A DNA stretch of 64,000 nucleotides from Macrostomum lignano (GCA_002269645.1 NIVC01000810.1:108620-172619), one strand, 5' to 3'. Positions 103 through 51,543 are shown, numbered from the stretch's first letter. Notes: generated by a model not told the origin, from the letters alone. Numbers and translations: made by a program.

Positions 103-2659
103 TCCAACCGAAAATTACTGAGATACTCAACCTGAACTCAATCATGCATGAGGACTTCCACGAGAACTTCACAATCAAGTCGACCAAGGGAAATCCGAGA
201 GTTAATCACAGCTGTTTAGTCAATGGAAAAATAATTGTGAGGCCTCGTACGATCGGGAAGTTTTATTCATTGTAGCGTAGCTAAACCGTGTGAAGTTGAG
301 CAAAACTCTCCAATTTCAGACAATAACTAATCAAATCAGTAATTCGAATAGATCCGAGACCCGCATGACTTTCACGCCTCATAGAAGTCACAGCGAACTT
401 TTGTGCTCAGCTCTGCAGTTGAGCAGCAACTCAGAAGTTGTCTTTAATGCTACTGTCTACAGGAATTTTACAGTTTACTGTAAGTGTCGAATATTTAACC
501 TCATACGTTAAAAATCTTGAACAGGCCTCAATCCTGCTGGTTAAAAATCGCAGACAAGGCCAACAACTCACAGTTTAACAGTCTGAACTCCAACAACGTG
601 ACAGAAGGCAGCGAGTTGAACGTCACGCTGGTGTCAGTTGGAGGCAGACCGCCCGTCAGAAGTTTTAGCTGCTGGGTTGGAGAGGACCAACTCAGTGAAG
701 TGAGTGCAGTGAGCTTTCGAGTACAGCCACATCGGTTATTGATTTCATAACATTACATGATTACAGATCAGACCGGCATCAAATACTTCTTCGATGAAAG
801 AAACATCAAAGAGGCATCTCACGCTTCGAGCGTCTAGAAGGCACCACAACAAGAGCCTCTGTTGCAAGTTTGAGCAGGACGAAGTTCTGACTGAATGGAA
901 TAACAAAAGCTTGGTTATTTTTTGTAAGTATTTTGTTTCCTAATGTAAACTGGGAAAGCAGGATATGCATCATCCAGAATTCTGTACTTTCAGACGAGCC
1001 CTTCGTAAATCTGTCCGACAAAAGCTTTAACGGAACCAGTTTTTCTGCAATGCTGAACATCTCCGATGGCAATCCGAGTCCCGAGACTCGGTGCTTTGCG
1101 GACGGAGTTCAGCTGGTCAGTCAGCCGCAACAAATTTAGTCATATCTTCTAATTACGAGCTATTGCAACTGTCTCATGCTCGTTGTAGAATGACACGGCG
1201 TCAGCTCTTCTGACAGGCCAGGCCACTCACAGCTTGACTCACCTGCTCGAGGCTCACAACGATCAAATCAACATTTCCTGCGTGATTTCGCAACAAGGAA
1301 AAGTGAATTTCTCCAAGACCCATTATTGGGTTCTCAACTCGACAGATGATGCTCCGAGTGAGTATTGCTTCGAATGCTGTGAAATCTATTAATAACTATG
1401 AATTTGAGCATCCAATTCTTTTTGTCTTGGATCTAAAGCTTTCGAGCTTAATTAAAGCCTAATTAAAGTTTGCACGCCAATAATAAAAAAGCAAAGTATT
1501 GATCGAAAGAAGCAAATGCATCGTAGAAGTAGTAGCTTGTGAATCTTTTTCGATAGATTTAGCGATAAACTCAAAAAATAATTTCTTAAATACTTATAAC
1601 AGATAATTAACTATGCTTTGCACTAAAATGTCACGGTCTGGGCTATTTTAAATTCTAGCTAAACTGCCAATCATCCGAGGCAATGGAAACAAAAATCTGC
1701 TATTTCTGCTGCTATTGCTGCTTCTGCTGTTGCTGCTTCTAGTGGCCGTGCCAGTTCTGCTGCGTCGCCGTCGCGGGGTCACCCTGGGAGAGCCGTCGGG
1801 CAAGCAGGTCAATGACTTATATCGCCGCACGTCGTTGGAACTGGAGCAGGACTTCATGCGGTCGCACTACCTGTACAAGGTTGGATTCAGAGAAATTTGT
1901 TGTGTACGAGCTAAAGCGTTAGACAGAAGTTCCAACTTAGGCATGTAGTCACCAGTTGTGGCAACATCTAAACTACCCTGGCGCACTTTAAGCGACATTT
2001 TCACACAACCGGCGAGAGGCATTACTGCCCATTCAGCCGACTCCCCTGAGCAAAGGCACACAAGCGCGCGGATACGTACGCAGTCATACGCACAGGCACA
2101 CACTCACACAGGAGTGAATGAGCGGCCCTAACTTTATTTACACTATGTACACTTCACTGTGCCTTGGAGGTTGGCCCTCAAGGATGTTAATTGCACGAGC
2201 AGAGCCAAGCCGAGATTTCAATTTAGCCCCAAATTAATGCGACTGCACTAGGAATCGAGCCTGGGCCGCTGGCACATCAGAGCGCCACACTGGACCACTG
2301 GGCTACGCCCCCGCATGCGGGATTGGATAAGTCTATGGTCAAACCACGCGATATAGGGCAGGATTGATTATGTCAATAGGTTAGCCTCATCAGACTCAGG
2401 CTCTCGCAAGGCATTTTCCTAATACAAGTAATTTTCCGTAGCAAAAATCCAAGTATTTTTTCCGGTTATATTTTACACTGTTGCACGATACCGAGTTGCT
2501 CTCTGCACCCATTCGCTCTGCCATTTGTAGAATCTACTGAACAACACCGAATATGCCACGGTGATCGGGTCGGGCACTGACCCGTCGGACAGCCTGGAGA
2601 CTCTGTACCTGCACATCGTTGGTCACATGGACGACGATGGGAATATGGTGTTCGCTTGA
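103..2659 (+). CDS. Receptor paralog A (5'-truncated by window): at least 3 Ig-like domains, TM, Tyr-motif tail
   Basis: Hand-spliced exons 103-236, 320-479, 554-699, 767-923, 994-1115, 1189-1357, 1659-1879, 2531-2659, all GT-AG with consistent phases. Ig-like halves such as VTEGSELNVTLVSVGGRPPVRSFSCW and NISCVISQQG. TM LLFLLLLLLLLLLLVAVPVLL followed by RRRR. Tail SLELEQDFMRSHYLYK|NLLNNTEYATV...ETLYLHI, homologous to C and D. Confidence 0.85.
1975..2312 (-). mobile_element. tRNA-derived SINE, family 1 (last intron of paralog A)
   Basis: The minus strand begins with a tRNA-like head (gtagcccagtggtcc...ggctcgattcc, A/B-box-like). The body recurs at about 41765-42052 (+) and 56575-57105 (-). 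Confidence 0.65.
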
Positions 2660-2672
2660 GAGACGCCTTTGT

Positions 2673-4165
2673 ATTGGAGAATTGTATTGGGGGAATTGTA
2701 TTGGGGGAATTGTATTGGGGAATTGTATTGGGGGAATTGTATTGGGGGAATTGTATTGGGGAATTGTATTGGGGGAATTGTATTGGGGGAATTGTATTGG
2801 GGAATTGTATTGGGGGAATTGTATTGGGGGAATTGTATTTTGGGAATCGTACTGGTGAATTTTATTGGGGAATTGTATGGAGGAATTGTACTGGGAAATT
2901 GTATTGAGGAATTGAATTTGAGGGAATTGTATTGGAGGAATTGTACTGGGAAATTGTATTGAGGAATTGAATTTGAGGGAATTGTATTGGAGGAATTGTA
3001 CTGGGAAATTGTATTGAGGAATTGAATTTGAGGGAATTGTATTGGGGGAATTGTACTGGGAAATTGTATTGAGGAATTGAATTTGAGGGAATTGTATTGG
3101 GGGAATTGTATTGAGGAATTGAATTTGAGAAAATTGTATTGGGGGAATTGTACTGGGAAATTGTATTGAGGAATTGAATTTGAGGGAATTGTATTGGTAG
3201 CGATGCTCGTTTAATAAGTAATAGAAAAATGAAGCTTAACACCAACATAAAAGTTTTATTGAATTGTATTGGGGGAATTGTATTGGGGGAATTGTATTGG
3301 GGGAATTTTATTGGGGGAATTGTATTGGGGGAATTGTATTGGGGGAATTGTATTGGGGGAATTGTATTGGGGGAATTGTATTGGGGGAATTGTACTGGGA
3401 AATTGTATTGAGGAATTGAATTTGAGGGAATTGTATTGGGGGAATTGTACTGGGAAATTGTATTGAGGAATTGAATTTGAGGGAATTGTATTGGGGGAAT
3501 TGTATTGAGGAATTGAATTTGAGGGAATTGTATTGGGGGAATTGTACTGGGAAATTGTATTGAGGAATTGAATTTGAGGGAATTGTATTGGTAGCGATGC
3601 TCGTTTAATAAGTAATAGAAAAATGAAGCTTAACACCAACATAAAAGTTTTATTGAATTGTATTGGGGGAATTGTATTGGGGGAATTGTATTGGGGGAAT
3701 TGTATTGGGGGAATTGTATTGGGGGAATTGTATTGGGGAATTGTATTGGGGGAATTGTATTGGGGGAATTGTATTGGGGGAATTGTATTGGGGAATTGTA
3801 TTGGGGGAATTGTATTGGGGGAATTGTATTGGGGGAATTGTATTGGGGGAATTGTATTGGGGGAATTGTATTGGGGAATTGTATTGGGGGAATTGTATTG
3901 GGGGAATTGTATTGGGGGAATTGTATTGGGGGAATTGTATTGGGGGAATTGTATTGGGGGAATTGTATTGGGGAATTGTATTGGGGGAATTGTATTGGGG
4001 GAATTGTATTGGGGAATTGTATTGGGGAATTGTATTGGGGGAATTGTATTGGGGGAATTGTATTGGGGGAATTGTATTGGGGGAATTGTATTGGGGAATT
4101 GTACTGGTGAATTGTATTGGGGGAATTGTATTGGGGGAATTGTATTGAGAGAATCGTATTGGAAG
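2673..4165. repeat. G-rich 14-15 bp minisatellite (GGGGAATTGTATTG)n with an internal 394-bp block duplication
   Basis: Visible tandem array. The AT-rich interruption ggtagcgatgctcg...aagttttatt occurs twice (about 3196 and 3590), offset 394. Confidence 0.95.
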
Positions 4166-5067
4166 AATTGTCTGTAGAATTCAAAATTTTCTAATCTTCC
4201 TTATTGACACTGTTACAACACACCAAAGCATATGCGCTTGTACCCACAGGTATTAACTGCAATGGCCTTTAAATAGGGTCAACATAAAACTTTCTACTTT
4301 ATGCTACTCTGCAACTCCAGTATCTCCAGTTGTATCCAAGCATTTTCCAAGCAATTTCAGCTCAAACTTGAGCTCTGAACTGCATGACTAAAGACTCATC
4401 TCAATGCGGATGCATGATTCAAATAATAGACCCAAACATTTATGAACCACAATGTTTATATTGTACTCCAGCAAGATTCCCCTAAAGGGTATGCAACCGT
4501 ATCTAAGCACTAACTGATACTTTTGTTAGCAAAAGCATCTATAATTCAAATTCGATATGAATTCCTGTTTATTCTGCCCGACTGTGGTTTCAAGTCTTGG
4601 CGACTTTTGTGAATGTTTATGCATTAATATTTGCTTCTAAATATGGAATCATCATTGCGTTTTAGTCACCTGTTTCGTTTAGAAACTCCAAAGACCTGTG
4701 CTCTCCAATCCTGTAAACTATCCGATTCCAGTAACTTTTGACAGTTACTAATTTTAGCATTGCTATCTAATTGAAGAGAGAATGTTTGCTTGTCTGAGAC
4801 AAACATACCAGAGGCATATCACAGTTCAGCATCTTATTCCAGATAATATATAACTTTTTCTTTACATAGAAGACTTTATAACTTCGCTTCCGGCAGAGAT
4901 TGTGGTTGTGGAACTTCTAAGCTAAAACTGACTTTTAAATTCAAAATTACCTGAATGTTCAGGCTAATTTGCAAATTGTGTACGAACTAAAGAGAATGGA
5001 TGGCAGAATGCAGGGAAAGATATTGGGTTTTAGAGTTATTCAACTTTACACCACATGCCTGTCTGAA

Positions 5068-6002: not shown

Positions 6003-9000
6003 ATGAACTATTGCTTGATAATTCTGGCGATTCTCTGTTGCTTCTGGACCTGTGAGTTTGGGAAGGAATTATATATTAAATGGGGAACAGGGACTGAACG
6101 TTTTCATATCAGAAGACCCCGAAATTCAATTCATTTAAATTCATCAACATGTCGACTGAATGAGTCTACATCAGCTGTCAAGCTGAGCTGAGTCAACGAG
6201 GATCATTAAGAGTCTCTATAGACGCCGTCCTGTCGCTAGAGCATGGTGGACTCCAGTTATTGTATCAAGAATTCTATAATTTCCTATGTCTAATCGACAG
6301 TTTCTAGTTTCTAAGCATTCGAAACGATAGTCAAGGGGCTAAAAATACCATCTCGTTCCTCTGTAGTTGTAGTTGTTTTCGAAAAACCTGACCTTGTGAC
6401 AGAATTGTTGAAAAAAAAGCTCATGCAAAAGTTATTCCATGTCCTTGAATTCAATGTGCCTAGTTTCTTCGATGAACATATAAATAGAATAAAAAGGACA
6501 AAAAACTAAAACCTGGGGACCGGGGAGTTGTACGTTAATAATATAGAAGCTTACATCGATTATCACTAAAACTTTACTATTAAATGTATGCTTTTAGCCC
6601 TTAAAAAGTTTAAATTTCTGACCAAATTTTTTTTTCAGGTCGTGCCATCAAGGTCGCCAGAGCTGATATCACCAATGCCTGGCAATCGTATGTGTACTAT
6701 CACTCAGTCTCCAATTGCTTCATCAGATCTATAGACATGAGAGGGCAACGGTTCTATTTTCATACCCACGACACTCCGGACCCCTCCGGCTACCAGTGGC
6801 TGCTGCTGAAACTGACCCGAAGTGTCCCAGTGCGCTCCATCACTTTCTATGGGAGACAGAAGGGTGAGCCCTGTCTCACCTTTTAGTATCAATCTGAACG
6901 ATACGAGTATTTTGCATCTGAATTTTTCAATAAACTTTTCTCAGTCAGCCACAGAGCCCTGGGCATCGAAGTGCTGCTCAGTGAGGAGAAGCCAGCCGGT
7001 CTGGATGAGGATGCACCCAACTGCACTGCAGCCACTTTCAGTCACAGTCTGTCCGGATTCCAACACTGCGGCTTCACCAGAAATGACAGCAGCAAGTCAA
7101 ACAGGTCGCACTTTGTAGATGAAGTGACCTGCTCAGCTGAGTGCGATGTCAAGGTTTGTCACCCAGTTGCTGCAACTCTTTCAATATTGGAATTCGCAGT
7201 GCTGCAGCATCACATTGCAGATGGCGCAGTATGTCCTGCTGAGGGAGTTCGTGGCCAATCAGACTGACAAGATGATGAACTTTGAGCTGCTTGAAATTGA
7301 AAAAGGGGACTGCTTTCGGCATAACAAAGACAGCAGCTCTTGTTGCTCTTCAGCTGACTTCTGTAAAGAACAACACACGGGATGCTTTGTGGAAGACTTG
7401 TCTCAGCTGAGACGCGGTAATGAAGCGATGATTCGAGCTCGGCTCCCAGGAAACTGCAGAGCACCTGCTGCATCAAACTGCAGCATCAGAAACGGTAGTG
7501 ATCTCTTGTATTTGAGTTCGGTAAGAGTTCGATTGAGATAAATACTTGAGCTTGCACCTGATATGGGAATTGAGCAGCACATGTGGGCGTTCGCATTGCA
7601 GAGGGCGACCTTCAATGGCTCTCTGATTCTGGAACCTTTTACAGTGGAGCTGCAGATGCACGGGGCGGAGTTGAAGTGCCGACACCGCTGCAGCGGTGGG
7701 ACTGCGATTGGCACTTCGCACACACTGGGTGTGCAGTCCGCCAGTGAGTCAGGCTGGAAATCAGTTTTCCACAGAAATCTGCATACAAAATGCATACAAA
7801 AATCCATATGGCTATGTTGGATGTTAGTTTGCTTTGCAGGAAAAATATGGGAAATCAAAATGCGGAAGGGTTTGAGTAGTAAGTGGTGCAGGGCTCTCGA
7901 CTGTCTTCATTGTTATGATTGCCTTTCGTTCTAATACTCATGTTTCTTAATTCTGTGGCGGTCACGCCACACGCGCGTATGCGCTCCAGCAGCCACCCCA
8001 ACCCCGGCCGGGGAGGCCGGCACTATGTGCACGGTCGCTGTGCGTTGATTGGCTGCCCAGTGTACACCGCTGGCCAATATAACTTTAGACTTTTGTCTCG
8101 CGCGCCTCCACCCTGCTACTTCAAATAAATTTTACGTGGCTAAACTCGCCACAGAATTAAGAAACATGAGTATTAGAACGAAAGGCAATCATAACAATGA
8201 AGACAGTCGAGAGCCCTGCTCCACTTACTACTCAAACCCTTCCAGAGCCCTGCACCACTCACTACTCAAACCCTTCCAGAGCCCTGCACCACTCACTACT
8301 CAAACCCTTCCAGAGCCCTGCACCACTCACTACTCAAACCCTTCCAGAGCCCTGCACCACTCACTACTCAAACCCTTCCAGAGCCCTGCACCACTCACTA
8401 CTCAAACCCTTCCAGAGCCCTGCACCACTCACTACTCAAACCCTTCCAGAGCCCTGCACCACTCACTACTCAAACCCTTCCAGAGCCCTGCACCACTCAC
8501 TACTCAAACCCTTCCAGAGCCCTGCACCACTCACTTGCTGCTCCCCGCAAACACCAGCTGGACAGACGGAGCAGCTGTCAATCTGACAGCTGACACACCG
8601 GGTTGCTACTGGATGCCAATCAGCCACAGCTGCTCTGTGCAGTCACAGCGAAATGGAAACACAGCGCTTCAGCTGCTGTCAGTGAGTCTCACACTGACCC
8701 ATGGTTGCACCTGTGTATTGGGTGCATGGCAACAATGACCTGACATTTAGCTGTGAAAACTGACTCATTTCAGAGCACGAACTCAAGCAGCACATTCTCA
8801 GTGACTGTGAGCAGGAGCTGGGGAAGCTCAGCATCCGTTTTGTGTCGGGTGAACCAGTCAGGACTGTTCGATGTAACGGCTCGTCGCGAGCTGCCTGCAG
8901 TTCTGTGCAAGTGTCCATGTACTTCTGCTTGTTTTTGGATGCATGTTAAATTTTCGTATTGTCTCTTTCCATAAATTCTTTTGTTAGTTGCCTTGGAGTC

Positions 9001-9818
9001 GATATACTCGAAGTTGGATTTTAAAAATCTAATGCGGAACCAGGTTACCAGTTAAATCTGATGTGGATGTTTAAAAATTATTGATTTAAAACTAATGTGA
9101 CCTCATAGAGGAGCTTTTCATTGTCTGAAATTCTTCAACAGTCCCTCCAGAGAGCATCGACATCTCAGGCCAGCTGCTCAATGGTTTTGACTTGAATCTG
9201 ACTGTGCTTGTGGAGGAGGGAAACCCGAGGCCGGAGCTGCAGTGTCTGCTGAGATCCGAGACTGTCGGAACAATGCAACTAGTGGTACGGTTGGTGTTTT
9301 TACGTCTTCTTTAGACAGTTGATTCACACCTTCAATTCAACTTTGATTGACAGCTGCTGACAGAAGTGGATCTGCGGGGCATCTGCGGTGGTTGGATTCG
9401 GAGAGCTCGAGTGTTCCACCGGTTCAGCGAGCAGCAGGCAGAGACTGCGGTCACGTGCCGCACCAACCAGGCCCGAACTGGCTTCAAAGATCCCAAGTTT
9501 TTGACGGAGAACTCGAAAACTTTTCAAGCCCTGTTCAGTGAGCAAGTCTTTGTGTACTTTTGAAACAGCGGGTCCTAATAAGTGCACAAAGTGATGCTAA
9601 AAGTACATGTACTTTTCTCTGTAGCAAACTGCGAGCTCCTCAAGCCCAGAGGGGTTAATAAAACTGCTGTAATTTGCTGTTCGCTGGCTGCAGTTTCTGC
9701 TGTCTCAGCTGTGGTGGTTTTTGCCTTGCTGAAGCGGCTGCCAGCAACGGGCCGTCGAAGCAAAGCCTCTGCAGTGGAGCTGGCGGCTGCCACAGCGCTT
9801 AGGGCCGCTGACCCGAAC
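6003..9818 (+). CDS. Receptor paralog B: signal peptide, F-type lectin domain, 3 Ig-like domains, TM (3' end not resolved)
   Basis: Exons 6003-6051 (MNYCLIILAILCCFWT), 6639-6863, 6945-7153, 7200-7520, 7602-7743, 8518-8681, 8774-8906 (GC donor gcaagt), 9142-9284, 9354-9537, 9625-9818 (TM AVICCSLAAVSAVSAVVVFALL-KR). All phases join in frame. FTP-like motifs AWQS, RSID, FHT, WLLLKL, YGR..HR, AQYV, LLEIE. Confidence 0.8.
7864..8243. repeat. 97-bp inverted repeat enclosing a 200-bp TG...CA solo-LTR-like core
   Basis: 7864-7960 is the reverse complement of 8147-8243 with 1 mismatch. The core 7954-8153 starts tgtggcg and ends cgccaca and contains CCAAT-type boxes. Confidence 0.85.
8208..8535 (+). 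repeat. 34-bp minisatellite made of the exon-6 splice acceptor of paralog B (9 acceptors)
   Basis: Unit actcaaacccttccag|agccctgcaccactcact, with AG at 8245+34n up to 8517. Homologous arrays: 25686-25890 in C (6 AG) and 39425-39690 in D (7 plus 1 variant). Confidence 0.9.
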
Positions 9819-10408
9819 GTAAGCTTTGCGAAATCAGTTTACCGAAACTCTTAGAACTGATGTGTTCCTTATTACCAGACTTTCTCTGTAATCAAGGAAC
9901 AATCACTTCTAGCACTTAGCTAGGCAACCCCGTTATCAATTGAAGGTACTGCTTACCTTGACTTCGTATGAGATATCTCTTCAGTAGTTCTCGTTGTAGA
10001 TCTCACAATAGATCTCGTCCGTTGTCTTCCGGAAGAATATTGAATCTGTTGTGGTCCTGCTTCTCCTGGTACTTCCGATGAAGTAGTTTCCGGCCGGTAT
10101 CTGCAGTCAGGACCAATCAGAGGCCTCGTATCAAACAATGGGTACCCTGCGCCGAATAGCGGTTTCTCTTTAGCCTTCTCCTTCTAGTAGTGCCTCTATG
10201 CACTCTAGGTAATGCTCCGGTAATCTCTAATAGATTCTCTAATGAGAAAGGCTTACCGCAACAACTCGACCGAGTCTCGATTGACTTGGTGATCAGAAAG
10301 TCTCGCTAAGAACTTCCTCTTCGGAGCGCTCCTCTTCCATGGGGAGAATGACTCCGGTACCGCTTTGAACCGCTTGTATTTATGGACGATTTCGTAGGCC
10401 AAAAATAT

Positions 10409-10900
10409 TAACATGATTCATGTGCTAAAATAGCAACGTGATTAATCTGCTATAAATAGTAACATGATTCATTTGCTAAAATAGCAACGTGATTAATCTG
10501 CTATAAATAGTAACATGATTCATTTGCTAAAATAGCAACGTGATTAATCTGCTATAAATAGTAACATGATTCATTTGCTAAAATAGCAACGTGATTAATC
10601 TGCTATAAATAGTAACATGATTCATTTGCTAAAATAGCAACGTGATTAATCTGCTATAAATAGTAACATGATTCATTTGCTAAAATAGCAACGTGATTAA
10701 TCTGCTATAAATAGTAACATGATTCATTTGCTAAAATAGCAACGTGATTAATCTGCTATAAATAGTAACATGATTCATTTGCTAAAATAGCAACGTGATT
10801 AATCTGCTATAAATAGTAACATGATTCATTTGCTAAAATAGCAACGTGATTAATCTGCTATAAATAGTAACATGATTCATTTGCTAAAAATAGTAACATG
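10409..10900. repeat. 51-bp AT-rich minisatellite (about 9.5 units)
   Basis: Unit aacatgattcatttgctaaaatagcaacgtgattaatctgctataaatagt, near-identical copies. Confidence 0.95.
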
Positions 10901-11758
10901 AATCATCCTTAAAGTTTAGGTGCACATGCGTGCACTTACTCACTTATAGTAGCATTCTACAATTGTCAATTTACTTTTGCGGGAGGTAGAACACTCTACA
11001 GAATTTAGTTTGAGCTTATCGTAAAAATATTCAGCAATGTAGCTGTGTATACTACTTCTATTATAAGTAGCAGGTACGTATTGTAAAGAATGATTCTAAT
11101 TGATTCAATACGGCAAATCATTCCAGGCTGTGTACTACTATGCTGAGGGCTGAGAGCGCAGCAGTTTCTGGGAGGCCTCTCCTTGACTTGCATCAGTGTT
11201 TATTCTAGTAAAGAATACAATTTCGTTAGCTATTGGTAATATTCTGTAGTGCTCACTGTTCCTTGTATGGAATTATTATCTTTATCATTATCAGAATCTT
11301 TATATATTCAGTTAGATGGATTCGTTCAAGATGCAAAGGTTCGAGAAATCGAGAAGCCTTTCGAGAAACAGAGTTTGTCGGTAAACGAAGAGATCAGTTA
11401 ATATAATTATACTTGAGAACTTTTTATTATGATTAACAGTGCAACGAATCGTAATATGCGTATTTGTTTAAATAAACAACTTAAAATCGAAAGACACTAT
11501 ACAGAATAGATTTATTGACGTCATATTTTTTTAAAGTTTTGTTTAGGTTTTTTTCACATCATTGTCTGTCAGAATTATTTATTGGTTGCAACATTAATTT
11601 GTTATTTTCATAGAATTGGCGTCTGGATTTTTAAACACTCCCAAATATATTTAACTCAAAACTAAAGGTCTTGGGAGTCACGTGGCTGAGGATGTTGGGG
11701 TCATGGGGCTGAGGACATTGGGGGTCATGGGGCTGAGGACGTTGGCGGTCATGGGGCT

Positions 11759-11993
11759 TGTAGTGAGTGAAACGAGGCTAGACTGCTTGTTGTAGTCGAT
11801 AGTTGCCGAAAGCTTGCAGGCGAGAATAATAGCGATCAGTATATTTATTGAATAATTGAGCTGAGACAGGGTGGTTGCTAAAGTCACACCATGCACATTT
11901 GATATTGTACGCATAAGGGTTGAGCTAGCAGAGTCACGCGGCGCAGCCGCTGACAACCCCCCAACACACACACGATAGTAGGCGCTGCCTACA
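11759..11993. mobile_element. Solo LTR-like element, 235 bp
   Basis: Termini TGTAG...CTACA with a perfect 5-bp TSD GGGCT on both sides. Confidence 0.75.
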
Positions 11994-12274
11994 GGGCTGA
12001 GGACGTTGGAGTTATGGGACCGAGAACATTGGGTCATGGGGCTGAGGTCATTGGGGGTCATGGGGCTGAGGATGTTGGGGTCATGGGGCTGAGGATGTTG
12101 GGGTCATGGGGCTGAGGATGTTGGGGTCATGGGGCTGAGGACGTTGGGGGTCATGGGGCTGAGGACATTGGGAGTCATGGTGCTTAGGAAATCGGAGACA
12201 TGGGGCTGAGAACATTGGGTCATAGGGCTGAGGAAATCGGAGTCATGGGGCTGAGAACATTAGGTCATGGGGCT

Positions 12275-12447
12275 TGTAGTAACTGAGTCAGAGGCCGTGA
12301 TTGCTGTGTAGCCAAACTCTTACAAATCTCGCCGCGCTGGGCACGCGTCTATATATTATGGAGTTAGAATTGGGGTGGCGGCACCCACCCCACTCCGCAG
12401 CCAATCAGACTGCCCGGGCGTACCATACTGTGCGTACGCACACTACA
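12275..12447. mobile_element. Solo LTR-like element, 173 bp
   Basis: Termini TGTAG...CTACA with a perfect 5-bp TSD GGGCT. Internal tatata and ccaatc motifs. Confidence 0.75.
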
Positions 12448-28900: not shown

Positions 28901-31900
28901 TCTGCGTCGTACGCGAGTCTGTAGGCTGTCGTGCGTCGTACGCTCGAGCAGCCTAGTCCCGACGGACACCGCGTCGTACGCGTGTCAGTGGAGGACCGCA
29001 GCCAGGGTCAGTACACGAACCCGGGTCTGGGAAAGGGGCACGAAAGGACCGAGCCCTTGAGCCCCATCATCACACTAGCTGTGACCTACACGCCTTCAAA
29101 CACTCATCTGGGACAGGTTAAGCTACAAATATTCAGTTTAGGTAGTTTCTTGCCGTACCGATACTCTATGATTTGTACAACGCAGGATTATCAAAACGAC
29201 ACCTTTTTTCAATAGTAGTGCCCATTCTACTTTTGCATGCAATTGTCAACACGTGAATCTCCAAAAAATCTGTAGATTCGTCTCTATTCACCTAGACAAA
29301 CAGCTCTAGTAGTAGCCACCTTCTCCGTAAACTGGTGCTTCGATTACATTTTACATTTTGTAATGAACGCGCAACCGAGAGAACGTGTATTATTCAAGAG
29401 TGCCAAAGAGCATATTATATAGAGGGGCGAGGGGGGCTGAGCAATCGATAGCAACGTACATGATGCGAGAACTCAAAAACTCGTTAGTCACTCGTTCTAC
29501 TGGAAGGCCATAGATCTAGTCATGAAATTTCTTGCAGGCAATAACAACAGCCAGAGTCTCCTTCTCAATCTGAGCATAGTTCCTTTGCGTGTTGGTCAGC
29601 GCAGCCGATCCATACGCCACAGGCTGTCCATTCTGCAGCAAAACGCAACCAACTCCGACCGATGAACTGTCAACTTGAAGCTCAACTTCCATATCGGCGT
29701 CAAACAACCTTAGCACAGGAGCGTCCGACAGAACATCTTTTAGCTTCTCAAAAGCTTGCTGCTGCTTCTCTTGCCAGTCAAAAAGCACCTCCTTCTTGAG
29801 CAGGGCACGAAGAGGTTCAGTGATGTCCGACGCATTCGGAATAAACTTGCCCAGGTAGGTTGCCATGACAAGCAGCCGCATCACTGCCTGCTTATCACCT
29901 GGAACCGGAAGCTCTTGAATGGCTTTTACTTTAGCAGGATCTGGACGAACACCGTCAGATGAGATCACGTGACCAACATAGTTTACTGAAGAAACACCAA
30001 CTTTCAATTTCTTGCGATTTAGCTTTAAATTCGACTGACGGGCCTCACTGAGCACCTTGAGTAGCTTCTGACTTCTGATCGTGCTCTTCGCGGGTCCGTC
30101 CCCAGACAAGCATATCATCAACAATTACCTCAGCCCAGCTGCTGAAAATTTTGCTTAGCTCACGTCGGTAGACTTCCGGTGCATCAATAGTTCCTGGGGG
30201 CAGGCGAACGAACTTGTATCTGCCCCACGGAGTGTTGAAAGTACAGAGCTGTGTACTTTCTTCGTCAAGTCTTATCTGCCAAAAACCAGTCTTTGCATCC
30301 AGCACGGTGAAGTACTTGGCACCTGGAATGCGCGCAACAACTTGCTCGACTGTTGTCATCGGGTAGTGAGCGCGCTTGATAGCTTTGTTGAGATGTGTCG
30401 GATCGATACACAGTCGCAGGCTGCCATCTGGCTTGTGCACAGTAACCAAAGAGTTTACCCAATCCGTTGGCTCAGAAACTTTAACGATGATTCCGAGGGC
30501 CTCCATGCGCTTTAACTCCTCCTGAACCTTGCCTTGCAGCGCAAAGGGAATCTTTCTCGGAGCATTGACGACAGGAACAGCATGTTCATCGAGAGTAAAC
30601 GAGTGCACGTAAGGCAAACAGCCAAGTTTTTCGTCAAACAGGTCACTGAATTCCTCTAGCACGAACTTTTCGTCAACCACAGGTGGCTGTCTAACGCTTT
30701 CAACTCGTCGAATTAGGTCCAGATCCTTCAGCGCTGGTAAACCAAGGATTGCTTGTTGCACCTCTGAAACCATAAACTCTATCTCGCACGGCCGACCCTG
30801 CACCTTGACCTTCAAACGACACTTTCCAACGACAGGAATGCGAGCTCCTCCAAAAGCCGTCAACACAGTGTGAGTTTTTAGCAACTGCTCACCGACTGGG
30901 AAATAATCTGCTGGCAACACGCTCACCTCTGCTCCGGTGTCTAGCTTGCATTGCAGCTTTTTACCATCTGGAAGCTGAACTTCTGCTAACCAACTGGAAC
31001 CATTATCAGTCTGCAGCGTTCCGATAAAATACACCTCTTCACCAGCACTAGCATCCTCACCTTCAGCTGCTGTTACATTCATAACCCTCCGGTTATTGTT
31101 GCTTCGGCATTGACTGCGAAAGTGGTTCAGACGGCCACAGGACAGACACCGCTTACCAAAAGCCGGACACTTGCCATCACGATGACTGTAACCGCAGTTG
31201 TGACAGCGACTTTCTCCAGGAAGGCGTCCCTGAAGTTGACTCGGGTTCGAACTTTGGCCAGGTTGGCCCTGCGCCGTCGACTGGGCCGCTGTACTCGACA
31301 CTGGGCGCCCTGAGTTGCGGATTTGTTGCTGTCGAGGCGCTGCCGGAGCAGGTGACAACCTTACGACGTTTAGGCCTTTCTCGACTTCCTTTAGCTGATG
31401 TCGCGCGGACTCTGCAGCTCTGCACATGTCAATTGCCGTTCTCAGGTCCAAGTCCGGTTCTCGAAGTAGCCGCTCTCGCATTCGTGAGTCGTTGCACCCC
31501 AGAACAATCTTGTCTCGAATCATTTTCTCTTTTAGTGTTTCGAAATTGCACGTTCCAGCCAGACGTTTCAAATCAGTCCCAAACAGGTCGACTGGCTCAG
31601 ACTCCTTCTGGTCGCGTTCCCAGAACTTAAAACGCTCGAAGACTTCGCTCGTACGCGGACTGAAGTGCTCGTCGAATAGCTCCAGCAACTCGTCAAAAGC
31701 TATTGGTCGCCATGTAATGAACGCGCAACCGAGAGAACGTGTATTATTCAAGAGTGCCAAAAAGCATATTATATAGAGGGGCGAGGGGGGCTGAGCAATC
31801 GATAGCAACGTACATGATTGGGGGACGGGGCGGCTGGGGCGCAGATGTGCGTACAATAAATTATAGTTACAAGTGCATCACTGACACATTTCACGATGAC

Positions 31901-32137
31901 ATCATGAGTACTGCAACTAATTAACCTCTTCGTTTTTTAGGCTTAATTAGGCTTCTGAATCAATGTTGACCGGAAAATCTCAATTTACCCCAGGACCTGT
32001 CCCGCATGGAGTACGCCACGGTGGTCAGTCCCGACCCGTCGGCCCCCCATCGGTCGGACAGTCTCGAGACGATCTACGAGAAGATCATCGGACACATCGA
32101 CGAGCACGGCGAGCTGGTGACGTCATGGGATATGTAG
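13934..32137 (+). CDS. Receptor paralog C: signal peptide, F-type lectin, 5 Ig-like domains, TM, ITSM tail (about 821 aa, apparently intact)
   Basis: 14 exons: 13934-13991, 14215-14439, 14514-14710, 25128-25448, 25530-25671, 25869-26032, 26125-26257, 26623-26771, 26847-27000, 27093-27398, 27489-27616, 27706-27859, 27941-28131, 31994-32137. The summed CDS is 2466 nt with no internal stop. Tail YLYK|DLSRMEYATV...ETIYEKI. Confidence 0.8.
16585..20436 (+). CDS. Gag-Pol polyprotein of Ty3/Gypsy element Y (intact 1283-aa ORF, chimeric N-terminus)
   Basis: Gag with CCHC knuckle CRRCGKTNHFAKMC, protease IDCGA, RT LDLRQGY/IVDDILV, RNase H CDASLDGLG, integrase HHCC and DNGPQF, in PR-RT-RH-IN order. 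Confidence 0.95.
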   Translation: MPRARVQAGSCLHRRLQLGGVLPHQAESRKKAILLHLLGEEGRRRAANVDASKSLQETKTALKAIFSSSRSVIAERFAFRQRAQHDGESIGDYVMALRELATNCKFGTFHDEIIRDQLVEKTCVPRIRERLLMEEDDLTLDDAIKKAERIEAAIRDAKQVSGPELHVKALSKKPKPAARHEKTAAAGPKCTRCGGNHGHKGECKAMGQKCRRCGKTNHFAKMCRMNAVSAIDTKEPAESSLTVLAVNNKSTDSLFCECRLGGQLIRLQIDCGAAVSLINMETFKKSFARHPLLPTSTKLEAYGGSAIKTIGKVELPVTFNGIRTEATFYVADKGANILGRDLFQALGFKIFQGDNRVMSISETTIERDFPGIFDGLGRSKSFIHRTKIDASVKPVSQPMRKLPIGLKDEVTSEISRMEQQGIIEKVDASEWVSNVVVTRKKESNKVRLCVDLRQVNKAVIADRYPVPSIEDLSASINGSKCFSKLDLRQGYQQIPLHPDSRGLTCFITDAGLYQFTVVPFGLSSSGAAFQRALQTVLRGAPGAINIVDDILVHGKDETEHDKNLREVLGRIHREGFTLNREKCKFRQASVDFFGLVISADGIKPTKCNVDAILRIPEPSTVAQIQSFLGAVNFLHKFIPHYSAIAEPLRQLLKKDADWHWGERERTAFRTLKSAVTSSPVLAHFDCQAETYVTCDASLDGLGAVLSQVQNEKEVPIAFASRALSPAEKRYSAGEREALACVWSIERWHYYLYGRRVTLRTDHKALTTLLDSKGMGHRPLRIHRWVERLRGYDVRFEHIPGADNKCADMLSRWATTERVPAEETDEEGYVYAVVDSKTTLTADALATATKEDEVLQAVLQYISGGWPSKVDSSLKPYFNVRDELFCWNNGQCLGRGERAIIPTSLRLQVIEEAHEGHPGVVRSKQRCRDTVWFPGIDRQVEDYVKNCTACTLAEKSGKPQQTIVTPIEWPDGPWDKVEIDIFGEVAAAPRHQRFLLVIHDLYSKWPEIAAMETVTSANIIKTLRKLFGRWGVPKMLISDNGPQFVSDEFEEFLRAEGIKHSRVSRYYPQGNGGVERFNRSLKEGLAANLRAGAKFEDAIDLVLKTYRTSQHALTGLTPAELMIGRKLRSGLQLLRPTPVQQRDDSDLRDSIAQRQAKNADYTNKRRRARDSMLQAGDWVWRQTPYRAHKLATRLKEPLKIASKAGRNTFVLSDGTKWQASRLVKCNSPPADNGAADQEDDWFDLPLPPAPPPRTGEPPPPPELRRSTRARRQPARYPLPEGGRM
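20432..20644 (+). mobile_element. 3' LTR of element Y (no matching 5' LTR)
   Basis: Follows PPT ggaaggggggagaa. TG...CA termini, TATA gtataaatat. Followed by gatac, the presumed TSD. Confidence 0.85.
26322..26575. repeat. 29-bp intronic minisatellite in paralog C (shorter array at 40110-40290 in D)
   Basis: Unit agttagatccaatgcggaaccagttcacc. Confidence 0.9.
28181..28323. repeat. 143-bp near-perfect palindrome (fold-back/MITE-like)
   Basis: 28181-28240 is the exact reverse complement of 28264-28323. The stem extends via tgtcat/atgaca. Confidence 0.9.
29359..31814 (-). mobile_element. Internally deleted Ty3/Gypsy element W in the last intron of paralog C
   Basis: 102-bp LTRs at 29359-29460 and 31713-31814 (1 mismatch). 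PBS tggcgacc on the minus strand. gag/knuckle/protease (LDTGA)/RT (VDDML) in ORF 30045-31856 and RNase H in 29516-30124. No integrase or PPT. Confidence 0.88.
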
Positions 32138-37750: not shown

Positions 37751-40700
37751 ATTCCTGCCTGTACATGTCAATTAAAATGGCTGCTTAGATTTCATTGGAC
37801 AACAGTTGCAGTCTGGGATTAAGTTCTAGGATATAAAATAAAAGATTGCGGTCTTCGGCTGATGCAGGTTAAGTCTTATCAAAGAAAAGTTTCATAAATT
37901 TCCTAATTTACTTGATTCACCATTGCTGAGTTTCTGGAAGCCCTCGCTAACTAGTGCTCTGCTCAAATTCCACTGCAAGAATCGCAGAGTAGCAGACTGC
38001 AATGGACGGTCGGCTGATCCTGATGATTTTCGGATGCAGCTTGTGCTGCTTGAGATTTTGTGAGTCTGTGAAAAAATCCTAATCTATGGGAAGCAAGAGG
38101 AGATTTCAGGCAGAAAAGTCTTTTAAAAGTACTTCTCAGACTTCCTTCAACTTCGAGGAGATTCTACCCTCTGGGAAACTTCTGCTATCAACATTCTCAA
38201 CGTCTGGAGTTTTTCTCTTTGTTTAACTTTGAAGTCGTGAAAAACGTTTCAAGGTCGTGCCATCAAGGTCTCCAGAGCGGAGATCGCCAATGCCTGGTAA
38301 TCTTCTGTCTACAATCACGCAGGCTGCGATTGCTTCATCAGATCAATGGACAAGCCAGGGCAGTGGACCTATTTTCATACCAGCGACACTCCGGACCCCT
38401 CCGGCTACCAGTGGCTGCTGCTGAAGCTGACTCGAAGTGTCCCAGTGCGCTCCATCACTGTCTATGGGAGGCAGGAGGGTGAGTCCTCCCTCACATTTCA
38501 ATATTAATCTGAACGATATATTGAATCAGATATTCTCACTAAACTTTTCTCAGAGAGCCACAGAGCCCTGGGCATCGAAGTGCTGCTCAGTGAGGAGAAG
38601 CCAGCCGGTCTGGATGAGGATGCACCCAACTGCACTGCAGACAATTTGAGTCAGAGTCTTTCCAGATTACAACACTGCGGCTTCACCAGAAATGACAGCA
38701 ACAACTCACATGAAGTGACCTGCTCAGCTGAGGCCGATGTCAAGGTTTGTCACCCAGTTGCTGCAACTCTTTCAATATTGGAATTCGCAGTGCTGCAGCA
38801 TCGCATTGCAGATGGCGCAGTATGTGCTGCTGAGGAAGTTCGTGGCCAATCAGACTGACAAGGTGATGAACTTTGTGCTGCTTGAAATTGAAAAAGGGGA
38901 CTGCTTTCGGCCTAACAAAGACAGCAGCTCTGGTTGCTCTCCAGCTGACTTCTGCAGGCTTTATCAGAGCGGATGCTTTGTGGAAGACTTGTCTCAGCTG
39001 AGACTCGGTAATGAAGCGATGATTCAAGCTCGACTGCCAGGAAACTGCAGAGCACCTGCTGCATCAAACTGCAGCATCAGAATGCGGAACGGCAGTGATC
39101 TCTTGTATTTAAATATGGTAAAAATTCGACTAAGAATACTTGAGCTTGCACCTGATATGGGAATCAAACAGCAAAGGTGGAAATTCACATTTCAGAGTGC
39201 GGTCTCGGCCAGCTCTCTGATTCGGAGAACTTTTAGAGTGCGGCTGTGGATGCACGGGGCGGATTTGAAGTGCCAACACAGCTGCAGTGGTGGGACTGCG
39301 ATTGGCACTTCGCACACACTGGGTGTGCAGTCCGCCAGTGAGTCAGTCTGGCAATCAGTTTTCCTGCTGTCACAGAATTCTGCATTGAAACTGCACACAC
39401 GATTTGAATGCGGCGGGCTTAAAGACCTGCAGAGCCCTGCACCACTCACTACTCAAACCCTTCCAGAGCCCTGCACCACTCACTACTCAAACCCTTCCAG
39501 AGCCCTGCACCACTCACTACTCAAACCCTTCCAGAGCCCTGCACCACTCACTACTCAAACCCTTCCAGAGCCGTGCACCACTCACTACTCAAACCCTTCC
39601 AGAGCCCTGCACCACTCACTACTCAAACCCTTCCAGAGCCCTGCACCACTCACTACTCAAACCCTTCCAGAGCCCTGCACCACTCACTTTCTGCTCCCCG
39701 CAAACACCAGCTGGACAGACGGAGCAGCCGTCAATCTGACAGCTGACACACCGGGTTGCTACTGGATGCCAATCAGCCACAGCTGCTCTGTGCAGTCACA
39801 GCGAAATGGAAACATAGCGCTTCAGCTGCTGTCAGTGAGTCTCAAACTGGCCCATGGTTGCACCTGTGTATTGGGTCCATGGCAACAATGACCTATAATT
39901 TAGCTGTGAAAACTGACTCATTTCAGAGCACGAACTCAAGCAGCACATTCTCAGTGACTGTGAGCAGGAGCTGGGGAAGCTCAGCATCAGTTTTGTGTCG
40001 GGTGAACCAGTCAGGACTGTTCGATGTAACGGCTCGTCGCGAGCTGCCTGCAGTTTTGTGTATGAGTCCATGTACTTCTGCTTGTTCTTGGATGCATGTT
40101 CCCAGTTCACCAGTTAGATCCAATGTGGAACCAGTTCACCAGTTAGATCTAATGCGGAACCAGTTCACCAGTTAGATCCAATGCGGAACCAGTTCACCAG
40201 TTAGACCCAATGGGGAACCAGCTCACTAGTTGCATCTAATGCAGAACCAGTTCACCAGTTAGATCCAATGCAGAACCAGTTCACCTAGTTGCTATAATAA
40301 ACTGCATTTCAGACCGCAGCTCCGGCCTGTCAATCAAGCTGCCTCCCGGACGAATCCGCAGTGGAAGAGAAGCTCAAGTCACCCTGCAGACGCTGGAAAC
40401 AGGAAATCCGCCTGCTCAGCACTTCTGCTCAATCGGTGGAGCCAATCTGAAACAGCTCAGTGTGAGTTTCTCACTGAGAATTTTCAACGCAAAAATTATG
40501 CATAAATTTATAAATTACCGACTTTCCTGACTCCAGCAGCCATCTGAGTCAAGCGCTTCATCAGTGTGGCGACTCAATGCATCGGCCAGCCACAACCAGA
40601 TGAGAATCATCTGCCAGGTCGCTCAGACTCATGCAGACGGCACACTTGTATTCAATCAGTCTGTCAGCAGTGAGCAACTCGATGTGTCATGTGAGTGGAT

Positions 40701-41764
40701 TGCAGTTCAGCATCTCTGATCCATCAGCAACTCAGATTGCTGAGCCAATTAACCATCCATGCTCACACCTGCACGACAACAGACGCGTCAAACAGCTCAT
40801 GGAATGCAACTCAGCCTCTGGTGATGAAGGAGGGCGAGCCTGTGTCAGTCTCAGTTCGGTCAGTCGGTGGCAACCCAGAGCCCAGTCACCGGTGCTGGCT
40901 GCGGACGGCCGAGGGTCTCAGCACCAGCATGACCAGGGCCCAGAACAACCCCGAGGCTCAAAATCTAGGCGTTGAGACGCTGGTGGAATCTGAGTTCAGC
41001 TTGAGTTCCACAAGGCAGATGAACGGAGGCTCCTTGGAGTGCAGGGTCTCTCAGCATGGCCTCGAAGATCTGGATGGCAGATTCACACAGAACGTTACTG
41101 TGTATTGTGAGTTGTCAAAAGTTTGGTTAAAGTTGTTAATTGTGATAACTAATTGCATATTAAATTTAACAGCGTGAAATTTATAGCTTTGTGTGGGCTG
41201 AGAGGTCTTAATACTAGTATAATAAGAACAACAAAAGACGCAACCCAGAGGAGTCAAGTCTTGAGTAAGTCTCTGTAGAGGCTGGGGACAGCAGCTCTCA
41301 ACCTGGATCACGTCGCCGCGGGTTCAAGGAAGGTGAACGGGCGTTGCAGTTGGGCCCAACACTCTCGTCAACTCGAAAGCAGCCCCGAATACACCGAGTC
41401 CTCGTCAGGGTTCACGTCTCGGCGTTGTACAGCGGGAAGCAGCGCTTCTGCTTATTATTGATACTCAATCAAAGCATCCAATGAAAGAATTCCTATATTG
41501 AATATTTACTCAACTACCTTTGTGAATAGTTTTTCGTGACTATAATGGAGACTTAATAATCGCCTAGAATTTTAAAAAATTCCCTTCAGACCAAGCAGAA
41601 GCAAGTTTGTCGATCTCTTTCTTCAACGGAACCCATTTTAACACCACGCTAAGCCCGTCGAAGGAATGGAGAGGAAATCCCAGAGCCAGCGCTCAGTGCT
41701 TCATCGATGGGAACTCTACTGGCTCTGTGAGTCGCTCTGAAGCATGACATTTCCCAGGGGGGGG

Positions 41765-42052
41765 GGGGCGTAGCCCAGAGGTTCAGTGCGGCAAAATTAG
41801 AATCTCGACTTGCCTCTGCTCGTGCAATTAACGCCCAGCTTGAGGGCCAACCCCCAAGGCACAGTGAAGTGTACATGCCTAACGATAAATAAAGTTAGGG
41901 CCGCTGTACACTCCTGTGTGAGTGTGTGCCTGTGCGTATGACTGCCTACGTATCCGCGCGCTTGTGTGCCTGCTCAGGGGAGTCGGCGGAATGGGCAGCA
42001 AAGCCTCTCGCTGGTTGTGCGACAATGTCGCTTAAAGTGCGCCAGGGTGCAC
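41765..42052 (+). mobile_element. SINE family 1 copy in an intron of paralog D
   Basis: Reverse-complement match to 1975-2312 (ttgagggccaacc...cacagtgaagtgtaca...cttaaagtgcgccaggg), with a partial head ggggcgtagcccag. Confidence 0.65.
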
Positions 42053-42592
42053 ACAGACTCTGCCTCTATGCAAAAATGCATGACTGCATGAAACCAATAT
42101 TAAAAAACCATCTTCAGCCGTTTTTTAATGACTCCGTGGAGGATGCAGCAGTTCTGTCTGGCAACACTGACAGCTATCAAGAAAATATTACAATTTCTTG
42201 TTTGATTACACAGAGGGAAATCTTTAATTTCACGATAAAGCGGAGCTGTTCATCTTTGCAATCAGCAGGTAAGGCCGCTTATGTCTCCCTGTTGACATAT
42301 GGAGATCAACAGAAATGAACATTCGAGTAGCAATTATTAGAATTTTAGGAGTCACTAGATGCAACAAAGGGAAGTCGGACGAACAAAGCAGTTTTCTACC
42401 AGTTCTGTTCGGCCTGCTGTCGTTGCTGCTTCTAGTAGTTGCGTTATCGATTTACTTTTACCGAAAGCGCATCGGTGCGGGACCGTCGGCCCTCGAGCTG
42501 GAGCAGGAGTACAGGAAATCGCACTACCTGTACAGGGTGGGTAGCTTGGTTGCATTCCATAATTGGTATCTCATTTTTGATGTGCTGGCGCC

Positions 42593-42977
42593 CCTGGTGC
42601 TAAAGCCCCTGGTGCTAAAGCCCCTGGTGCTGGCGCCCCTGGTGCTAAAGCCCCTGGTGCTAAAGCCCCTGGTGCTGGCGCCCCTGGTGCTGGCGCCCCT
42701 GGTGCTGGCGCCCCTGGTGCTGGCGCCCCTGGTGCTGGCGCCCCTGGTGCTGGCGCCCCTGGTGCTGGCGCCCCTGGTGCTGGCGCCCCTGGTGCTGGCG
42801 CCCCTGGTGCTGGCGCCCCTGGTGCTGGCGCCCCTGGTGCTGGCGCCCCTGGTGCTGGCGCCCCTGGTGCTAAAGCCCCTGGTGCTGGCGCCCCTGGTGC
42901 TAAAGCCCCTGGTGCTGGCGCCCCTGGTGCTGGCGCCCCTGGTGCTAAAGCCCCTGGTGCTAAAGCCCCTGGTGCTG
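42593..42977. repeat. 15-bp GC-rich minisatellite in the last intron of D
   Basis: Units gcccctggtgctggc / gcccctggtgctaaa. Confidence 0.95.
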
Positions 42978-44084
42978 GTCTTATAGAGACGGAAGAGAGA
43001 ATAATTAGTTAATTACTATGCATTTAAGCCTCATCTACCTGAACCGGTTTACCCAGGACCTGTCCCGCATGGAGTACGCGACGGTTGTCAGTCCCGACCC
43101 ATCGGCCCCCCGTCTGTCGGACAGTCTCGAGACGATCTACGAGAAGATCATCGGACACATCGACGAGCACGGCGAGCTGGTGACGTCATGGGATATGTAG
43201 GGCTGGGGGATCGTAAGGCGATCAAGGCAGATGAACTTTTCTGTAACTAACAGGTGTGCTGTGCTGTAGACATCAAAGCTCAGCTTCTTCAAGTTCCGAT
43301 TTTTAAAAATTAACGGAGAGACTCCGAGAGAGACCCTCATTTACTCAAGATTTCTCTGTGCTTTTCTGTTTTTTATAGAGAATGACTTTTTTAAGCTTCC
43401 GAACTTTGTAATAACTATAATTATTTCGGCAAAGACTTTTGCTTCACTAATAGCTTATGATTGGTTATTCAGATATCTTTATGCTAACTAAAACTATTCC
43501 TGAAACTGCAACTGGCTGCTGTCGAAACATTACGAACTAGAATTTAATATTTTTATCAATAGTAGCACTAACGATGCCGTTTGAGATATTTTTATTCAGG
43601 CAGAATATATAAATGCTCAAAATTTACTAAAAATACCCGACAATAACAGGTATGGCGCGTTTACCATAAGCGCTTAAACCAAATTTGCTTTCCCCTGACG
43701 CATGCTCCCATCTGTTTGTGCATAATTAGTGGCTAATCTGGTAACGGATGTGTGCGCTAGCGGTGGTCAGCCGACCGGCTTTCTCACAGATTCACCAGCA
43801 ATCTACACTGAACCAGTTCAAGCGCTGATTTGGATATCAAATTTATTAATAGAGAGAGAAAACCGCTATTTAAAGTGGGCTTGGTTACAAATATCCGGGT
43901 TTGATGTTGATAGCTGCTATCAATATCGATTGATTTGCTTTAAATAGCACTGGTGAATGCTAGCCTATAGTGATGTTATTTCCATTGCAATCAACTTCAG
44001 TCCCTGAAGCTGTAGCCATGCCCCGATTAAACATTGGATCAGCTGCTGAGCCGCTTAATAAACATTGGTCTAATATGAAATTCT

Positions 44085-45347: not shown

Positions 45348-51543
<6,196 letters not shown>

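Follow-up and report, generated by a model that had tools for sequence, protein, structure and literature searches.

Tyrosine motifs in cytoplasmic tails have been described in several receptor systems to which the locus considered here may be compared. PD-1 (PDCD1) carries an inhibition motif of the immunoreceptor tyrosine-based type (ITIM; VDYGEL) together with a switch motif of that type (ITSM; TEYATI), SLAM-family receptors carry ITSMs that bind SAP/EAT-2, the Alr genes of Hydractinia form a tandem cluster of divergent, lineage-restricted type I genes of the immunoglobulin (Ig) superfamily amid pseudogenes (PMC9546547), and amphioxus BbLcLRR is an invertebrate receptor with ITIM-like tyrosines. 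Here we describe a 64,000-nucleotide stretch of Macrostomum lignano DNA (GCA_002269645.1 NIVC01000810.1:108620-172619; the window, with positions counted from its first letter), in which four paralogous genes, A, B, C and D, stand head to tail on the + strand in one tandem array. Genes A, C and D are the only gene copies in the window with a conserved intracellular tail, which is made up of the end of the transmembrane (TM) exon together with the terminal exon, holds three invariant tyrosines, and is better conserved than the ectodomain that precedes it. From its sequence we tentatively favour, at a little short of an even chance, a role of the tail as a convergent, lineage-specific phosphotyrosine docking module.

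The likeness to PD-1 consists of a type I Ig-superfamily architecture, the motif TEYATV of gene A, which is one residue off TEYATI, and two distal tyrosines ∼20 residues apart (18-21 in the Macrostomum tails; 25 in PD-1, Y223/Y248; PMC7078208). However, there is no homology with PD-1, the Macrostomum tails lack an upstream ITIM, the corresponding motif of C/D is MEYATV, and the Macrostomum ectodomain is long and multi-domain, whereas that of PD-1 is a single V domain. Similarly, TIYEKI of C/D and TLYLHI of A fit the TxYxx[V/I] pattern of the SLAM family (PMC8631942), but the Macrostomum tails share one ITSM rather than an array and exhibit no sequence relationship to that family. With Hydractinia Alr the locus has in common its clustered and lineage-restricted character, Ig domains that are barely recognisable, and tail tyrosine motifs inferred by pattern matching (PMC9546547). 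Alr tails, however, are more divergent than their ectodomains, whereas the Macrostomum tail is the most conserved part of the protein; the two systems also belong to different phyla, have different motifs (ITAM/ITIM in Alr, where ITAM denotes the immunoreceptor tyrosine-based activation motif, versus ITSM-like/YxxPhi), and have no demonstrated homology. In heterologous cells BbLcLRR is phosphorylated by Lck and binds SHIP1 and SHP1/2 (PMC8211107), which provides a precedent for functional tyrosine motifs outside vertebrates, although its ectodomain consists of leucine-rich repeats and its function was demonstrated experimentally, whereas that of the Macrostomum tails is predicted from sequence.

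Exon structure of the tyrosine tail

The terminal exons of A, C and D translate exactly as the original prediction had reported. Together with the end of the TM exon they define a module of ∼55 residues with the consensus S-LELE-x-[DE]-[FY]-x-[RK]-SHYLY-[KR]/[ND]L ... [TM]EYATV[IV] ... SDSLET[LI]YxxI[IV]GH[IM]D[DE]xG, in which the slash marks the exon junction. Three tail exons and three LELE..SHYLY[KR] boxes, and no more, are present in the window, and the box of the gene A TM exon is 63-71% identical to those of C/D by tblastx. Each TM exon has a phase-0 donor, ...SHYLYK/GTTGGA in A (1879), ...SHYLYK/GTAGGT in C (28131) and ...SHYLYR/GTGGGT in D (42536), and the tail exons are entered, also in phase 0, at the acceptors ...tttgtAG (A), ...ccccAG (C) and ...acccAG (D). 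A third YxxL motif spanning this junction, likewise part of the original prediction, is borne out by these GT...AG sites as YK/NL in A, YK/DL in C and YR/DL in D. The ‘tAG’ of the gene A acceptor is itself an in-frame stop, and only 8 and 16 open codons lie upstream of the acceptors of C and D, respectively; the coding similarity thus begins at the acceptor. Chaining of the exons through GT-AG sites gives uninterrupted open reading frames (ORFs) that end at the tail stops, apart from one TAA codon in D. The junction tetrapeptides would therefore be real provided that the TM and tail exons are joined, and comparison of the three genes supports such joining.

In all three genes a hydrophobic segment of 21-23 residues is followed by RRRR/RKR. 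N-x-S/T sequons number 25 in the ectodomain and 0 in the tail, and both features are as expected of a type I topology. Gene A, the N-terminus of which lies upstream of the window, is represented by three Ig-like domains encoded by two exons each, the TM exon and the tail exon, and ends at 2659. Gene C comprises, in order, a discoidin-like N-terminal region (a possible assignment, discussed below), several Ig-like domains, the TM exon and the tail exon.

Conservation of the tail and the mosaic of C and D

The original prediction held that the tail is conserved although the ectodomains are very divergent, and the comparison of A with C agrees: 36/66 cytoplasmic residues are identical (54.5%) versus 88/280 in the ectodomain (31.4%; Fisher one-sided p = 4.4e-4). 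By part, identity between A and C/D increases from 28-31% in the ectodomain (nonsynonymous divergence, dN, 0.86-0.89; synonymous divergence, dS, saturated) to 49-52% in the TM exon (dN 0.46) and 54% in the tail exon (dN 0.38). The comparison of dN/dS (omega) between tail and ectodomain that the original prediction had suggested indicates a constraint that is moderate rather than strong, with an omega of 0.28-0.44 for the tail at synonymous sites that are near saturation (dS 0.9-1.4). The combination of saturated dS with a low tail dN implies that it is the protein that is constrained. Each of the four tyrosines in the C tail has its counterpart in A, and tyrosines make up 5.4% of tail residues but 2.0% of ectodomain residues. 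Identity between A and C is clustered in three blocks with one tyrosine in each, and extends beyond the Yxx-Phi residues to E at -1, A at +1 and T at +2 of EYATV, and to SDSLET before the last tyrosine.

The tails of C and D are 96% identical with a dS of 0.10, and their terminal exons differ at 5 nucleotides (3 synonymous and 2 non-synonymous, both of the latter in the linker), the last 90 nucleotides being identical. A dS of ∼0.10 is found in exons 1-8 and in a 187-bp block around the tail exon, whereas between 27245/40935 and 31984/43048, which takes in the second half of exon 9 and all that follows up to and including the TM exon, dS exceeds 1 and amino-acid identity is 50-56%. C and D are thus mosaics, and this pattern in the aligned exons indicates recombination or gene conversion with a more distant paralog. 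An explanation of the C-D tail identity by purifying selection was accordingly rejected, as the tail shares its dS of 0.10 with the young 5′ block, although dS is above 1 in the exons that separate the two. The few changes between the C and D tails fit a constraint on the motif blocks, but are too few to count as evidence.

The same mosaic lends itself to an explanation in which the tyrosines have no specific function at all, and the tail, an unremarkable cytoplasmic segment under moderate constraint, belongs to a young and partly decaying cluster, where fast ectodomains and homogenisation of C and D feign conservation and the ITSM-like hexamers occur by chance. Such an origin would account for the shared dS of the C-D tail and exons 1-8 beside exons 9-12 with dS above 1, for an omega of 0.66 across ectodomain exons 1-8 (1.75 in exon 4), and for the nonsense codon in D, the retroelement in C and the loss of box and tail in B; moreover, the tail is known from two independent lineages only, and protein and metagenome searches found no homologous tail. 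It fits poorly, however, with the tail omega of A versus C/D at saturated dS, with a tail dN under half that of the ectodomain, with the confinement of identity to three tyrosine-bearing blocks, and with the two ITSMs of A, and we regard it as improbable.

Motif classes and candidate roles of the tail

ITSM and ITIM consensus definitions were taken as quoted in PMC8631942. The tail motifs had been labelled as PD-1/SLAM-type ITSMs, and a strict TxYxx[V/I] is indeed found, in A at two sites (TEYATV, TLYLHI) and in C/D at one (TIYEKI), against an expectation of 0.02-0.03 per composition-shuffled tail. Only T[LI]YxxI is common to all three genes, however, and MEYATV is non-canonical, such that the original prediction holds for motifs in a cytoplasmic tail that is more conserved than the ectodomain, whereas the PD-1/SLAM-type label is not supported. 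The adaptors SAP and EAT-2 have, to our knowledge, been described only in vertebrates, and since a ‘switch’ is by definition a matter of SAP/EAT-2 binding, the term is unjustified here. Purely conjectural, too, are the tandem-SH2 (Src homology 2) phosphatase partner and the inhibitory sign that had also been proposed.

Neither the tail nor the receptor showed homology to the PD-1/CD28 or SLAM/CD2 families, the likeness to PD-1 being a single BLASTP 8-mer (NTEYATVI/QTEYATIV). An exhaustive search of 1.84 billion representative proteins with a profile of the three tails gave no genuine match; four candidates were rejected as repetitive surface-type proteins that aligned in 6-19 stretches. Word-index searches returned no match for the TM exon plus tail of D and, for the 411 residues of A, only the M. 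lignano protein P0006, which is without the tail; the alignment of the tail exons, used to scan metagenomes, also gave no match. The lack of a homologous tail in these searches implies that the tail is a lineage-specific invention, and that whatever function it may share with the ITSM tails of vertebrates arose by convergence; the convergence originally suspected is thus upheld, as nothing beyond the 8-mer is shared.

If the tail is a docking module, EYATV and ET[IL]YxxI, and possibly the junction motif YK[ND]L as well, would become targets of a Src-type kinase once the receptor is engaged, and SH2 proteins would bind to the phosphotyrosines so formed. Acidic residues upstream and I/L at -1 are reminiscent of the sites on which Src-type kinases act, and the hydrophobic +3 residues at the tail tyrosines are suited to SH2 binding. 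Tyrosine-to-tyrosine spacings are 8-9 for the proximal pair and 18 in A or 21 in C/D for the distal pair (EYATV to T[LI]YxxI). In known docking receptors for tandem-SH2 phosphatases the phosphotyrosine motifs are ∼22-30 residues apart, and the distal spacing is at or just under this range; a tandem-SH2 protein might fit this pair, for instance a phosphatase of the SHP-2/corkscrew type or a kinase of the Syk type. Alanine at +1 from the phosphotyrosine, as in EYATV, is reported as favourable for the N-terminal SH2 domain of SHP1 (PMC8631942). Schistosoma has a Syk kinase, SmTK4 (PMC2820527), and M. lignano itself a member of the Vav family (PMC6562523), which makes an SH2 machinery plausible. 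Exons, junctions, motifs, relative conservation and the lack of homology to known tails are seen in the sequence, and from them we infer phosphorylation, a partner and a sign of signalling; an SH2 protein of whatever kind might bind, with an inhibitory outcome, an activating one or both.

Several findings weigh against this docking reading. The C/D motif MEYATV, with Met at -2, is outside the ITSM/ITIM consensus; neither the ITIM pattern [S/I/V/L]xYxx[I/V/L] nor the ITAM pattern Yxx[L/I]-x(6-12)-Yxx[L/I] has a match in the tails of A, C and D; and the probability of two strict ITSMs in A against shuffles (p ∼3.5e-4) refers to a motif class that was picked after the sequence was seen. At a background identity of 55%, conservation of 4/4 tyrosines has a chance probability of ∼0.09. 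The tails of C and D share recent ancestry or conversion, so that the argument draws on no more than two lineages that are independent, A and C/D. P0006, the sole annotated A-like M. lignano protein, stops at ...SHYLY, i.e. at the end of the TM exon, and no AATAAA or ATTAAA is found within 800 nucleotides of the stops, an absence that is uninformative as to the 3′ end. In gene D the first ectodomain exon is interrupted by an in-frame TAA (38298-38300), where B and C have CAA. Given this premature stop, the 10.4-kb retroelement in an intron of C and the incompleteness of A in the window, no copy is demonstrably a working gene. Finally, all three conserved tyrosines match Yxx[LIVMF] (YK[ND]L, YATV and Y[LE][HK]I).

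This last match is the starting point of the main rival explanation, in which the tyrosines are YxxPhi sorting signals; the unphosphorylated tail would bind the clathrin adaptor mu subunit, and a lectin-like/Ig uptake receptor would thereby be endocytosed or sent to lysosomes, with SDSLE as an acidic, serine-rich accessory determinant. The hydrophobic residue at +3 of each tyrosine recalls YxxPhi endocytic receptors, and the +1/+2 residues of the distal tyrosine vary (LH versus EK), as YxxPhi predicts. Three such matches are not unusual for the composition of the tail, however (1.0-1.3 expected, p = 0.05-0.11), and conservation extends well past four residues, as the invariant E at -1, A at +1 and T at +2 and the six residues before the distal tyrosine exceed what YxxPhi needs. 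Ligand uptake would be suited by a weak F5/8 type C signal in the N-terminal region, but this lectin-like assignment is under the Pfam threshold (14 bits versus 28.2). We consider sorting signals somewhat unlikely. Conservation past the four-residue sorting signal, together with the hydrophobic +3 residues and the spacing of ∼20 residues, favours the docking module.

A canonical ITAM was rejected, since the nearest candidate, YK[ND]L-x4/5-YATV, has a tyrosine spacing of 8-9 and Val at +3. The proximal pair might instead be a compressed, ITAM-like site for a Syk/Shark-type tandem-SH2 kinase, in which case the protein would be an activating receptor, e.g. a phagocytic one like Draper. Its two Yxx[LV] motifs are close and invariant, and both flatworm Syk kinases (PMC2820527) and invertebrate Draper-type ITAM signalling (cited in PMC9546547) are on record. 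The spacing, however, falls short of the 10-13 implied by Yxx[I/L]x(6-9)Yxx[L/I] (PMC9546547), and the second motif ends in Val rather than Leu/Ile, such that the strict pattern is unmatched. We find a compressed site of this kind very doubtful, and retain the docking module, in which partner and sign are left free, as the preferred reading.

The gene family and its setting

The window is eukaryotic and repeat-rich, with very short introns. When the 785-residue model of gene C was compared with 5.8 billion proteins, 6 matches were obtained, all of them M. lignano proteins annotated as ‘Ig-like domain-containing protein’, with a best local identity of 98% over 98 residues. These matches place the window in M. 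lignano or a very close relative, and not in an arthropod, to which the mention of corkscrew and Shark in the original prediction would point; the family was not mentioned in limited literature searches. Judged by these sequences, the family is restricted to Macrostomum and tandemly duplicated, and encodes putative type I receptors with Ig-like domains and one TM helix. It is a new set of genes within a known kind of system, that of invertebrate receptors with tyrosine-motif tails.

Features expected of type I members of the Ig superfamily are present, namely Ig-fold repeats, a signal peptide (seen in paralog B) and a single TM helix. The individual lines of evidence for the Ig assignment are each weak, yet concordant. 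The Ig exons have phase-1 junctions at the domain boundaries; a Pfam C2-set_2 match to the ectodomain has E = 0.002, under the cutoff; among Protein Data Bank sequences, nectin-2 was the only match to the ectodomain (E = 0.13); and the AlphaFold2 (AF2) model of a single-exon domain (exon 9; predicted local distance difference test score, pLDDT, 54) gave Foldseek matches that are almost all Ig-fold (TM-scores 0.55-0.62). Foldseek also matched one Ig exon with the ectodomain of PD-1, but these matches were dismissed, as they reflect a generic Ig-fold in a low-confidence model. The N-terminal region is possibly discoidin-like: its best match to F5/8 type C (PF00754) is 14 bits (E = 0.056-0.073) and thus sub-threshold against a gathering cutoff of 28.2. 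A Protein Data Bank profile search of this region found no match, and an AF2 model of the N-terminal 298 residues was discarded (pLDDT 34).

The coordinates of the four genes and their surroundings are collected in Table 1.

Table 1. Receptor genes, their tail-encoding exons and other features of the window
Feature	Position	Strand	Remarks
Gene A, ectodomain exons	103-236, 320-479, 554-699, 767-923, 994-1115, 1189-1357	+	Colinear with the Ig exons of C/D, 21-41% identity
Gene A, TM/juxtamembrane exon	1659-1879	+	Poly-Leu TM segment, RRRR, then NDLYRRTSLELEQDFMRSHYLYK; phase-0 GT donor
Gene A, terminal exon	2531-2659	+	NLLNNTEYATVIGSGTDPSDSLETLYLHIVGHMDDDGNMVFA, then stop; two strict TxYxx[VI] motifs
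Gene B	∼6003-9818	+	Signal-peptide exon ∼6003-6051, MNYCLIILAILCCFWT
Gene C	14215-32137	+	13 exons, open 785-codon frame, all junctions AG/GT
Gene C, TM/juxtamembrane exon	27941-28131	+	...RKRLGLRSSSLELELEFRKSHYLYK/GT
Gene C, terminal exon	31994-32137	+	DLSRMEYATVVSPDPSAPHRSDSLETIYEKIIGHIDEHGELVTSWDM, then stop; DLSRMEYATVV...SDSLETIYEKIIGHIDEHGELVTSWDM, then stop
Nested Ty3/gypsy-type long terminal repeat (LTR) retroelements	14719-25086	+	10.4 kb, 8 nt past the donor of a short gene C intron
Gene D	38254-43200	+	13 exons as in C; paralog of C
Gene D, TM/juxtamembrane exon	42349-42536	+	...RKRIGAGPSALELEQEYRKSHYLYR/GT
Gene D, terminal exon	43057-43200	+	Same protein as C except HR to RL
Bestrophin channel gene (Pfam PF01062)	46493-48191	-	45-bp repeat array in intron or coding region
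NYD-SP28/DRC1-type sperm-tail coiled-coil gene	52698-57504	+	Flanks the cluster

Gene B differs from its neighbours at the C-terminal end. Its six N-terminal exons share 80-84% protein identity with C/D, whereas its stalk is different and shorter, and its TM exon ends at ...SAVELAAATALRAADPN/GTAAGC without the LELE..SHYLY box and without a tyrosine motif; a GC donor is used at 8907. In the next 4.3 kb (9851-14200) no recognisable tail exon was found, only noise, and a candidate fourth tail exon at 13246-13320 was rejected as a 26-residue match that contains a stop. The layout of B versus C/D recalls paired receptors, but the B TM segment has no charged residue. Together with the mosaic recombination of C and D, the contrast between B and C/D gives a hint of paired, rapidly diversifying receptors. 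In its full form this would be a flatworm-specific, fast-recombining paired-receptor system with near-identical N-terminal recognition domains and either a tyrosine tail (A, C, D) or none (B), which might recognise self/non-self, microbes or mate/sperm and feed an SHP-2-type inhibitory pathway through an independently evolved tail; we give this proposal little credence.

Around gene A, a 14-bp unit (TTGTATTGGGGGAA) is repeated in ∼108 copies in a 1.5-kb array at 2669-4171, which begins 10 nucleotides past the stop, and no poly(A) hexamer occurs within 1.5 kb on the 3′ side of the gene. Gene A and P0006 are near-identical in the last Ig domain and the TM exon only. A dispersed repeat of ∼250 bp (copies 84-90% identical) is present in the last intron of A (1975-2231), in an intron of D in the - orientation (41787-42069) and near the DRC1-like gene (56558-56800), and is probably a SINE or MITE-like element (short interspersed element or miniature inverted-repeat transposable element). 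Homologous introns of B, C and D (8210-8535, 25686-25886 and 39430-39688) contain a 34-bp minisatellite of 6-10 copies with 98-99% matches, the copy number of which varies among the paralogs, and introns of C and D (26301-26575 and 40102-40290) contain an additional 29-bp minisatellite.

Within gene C, the inner retroelement (16001-21258) has 614-bp LTRs that are 100% identical and an intact pol ORF of 1286 residues (reverse transcriptase, RNase H and integrase), and its identical LTRs and uninterrupted ORF imply a very recent insertion. The outer element has 195-bp terminal repeats that are 90% identical, and its pol is fragmented. In the models of UniRef relatives the acceptor is placed 21 nucleotides downstream of that in our gene model (...DVK/MAQYVLL versus ...DVK/CCSIALQMAQYVLL), at 38745-38811 in D and 14711-25148 in C; both alternatives are in frame, with an intron of 46 or 67 nucleotides, and the tail is unaffected. 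Downstream of its in-frame TAA, the remaining ∼780 codons of gene D are open. A D-like M. lignano model, P0005, begins at the next Met after the position of the TAA, a start that could reflect a real lesion, albeit weakly so, since the models P0004 and P0002 are also N-terminally truncated.

At present, what can be said of the tail is a prediction at the level of motifs, which concerns an orphan gene family with two independent sequences and is useful for annotation. RNA interference and transgenesis are established in M. lignano. If the tail does dock SH2 proteins, Platyhelminthes would join cnidarians, amphioxus and vertebrates as animals with fast-evolving clusters of Ig-type receptors that bear tyrosine tails, and the locus would support a repeated, convergent recruitment of tyrosine-motif signalling logic.

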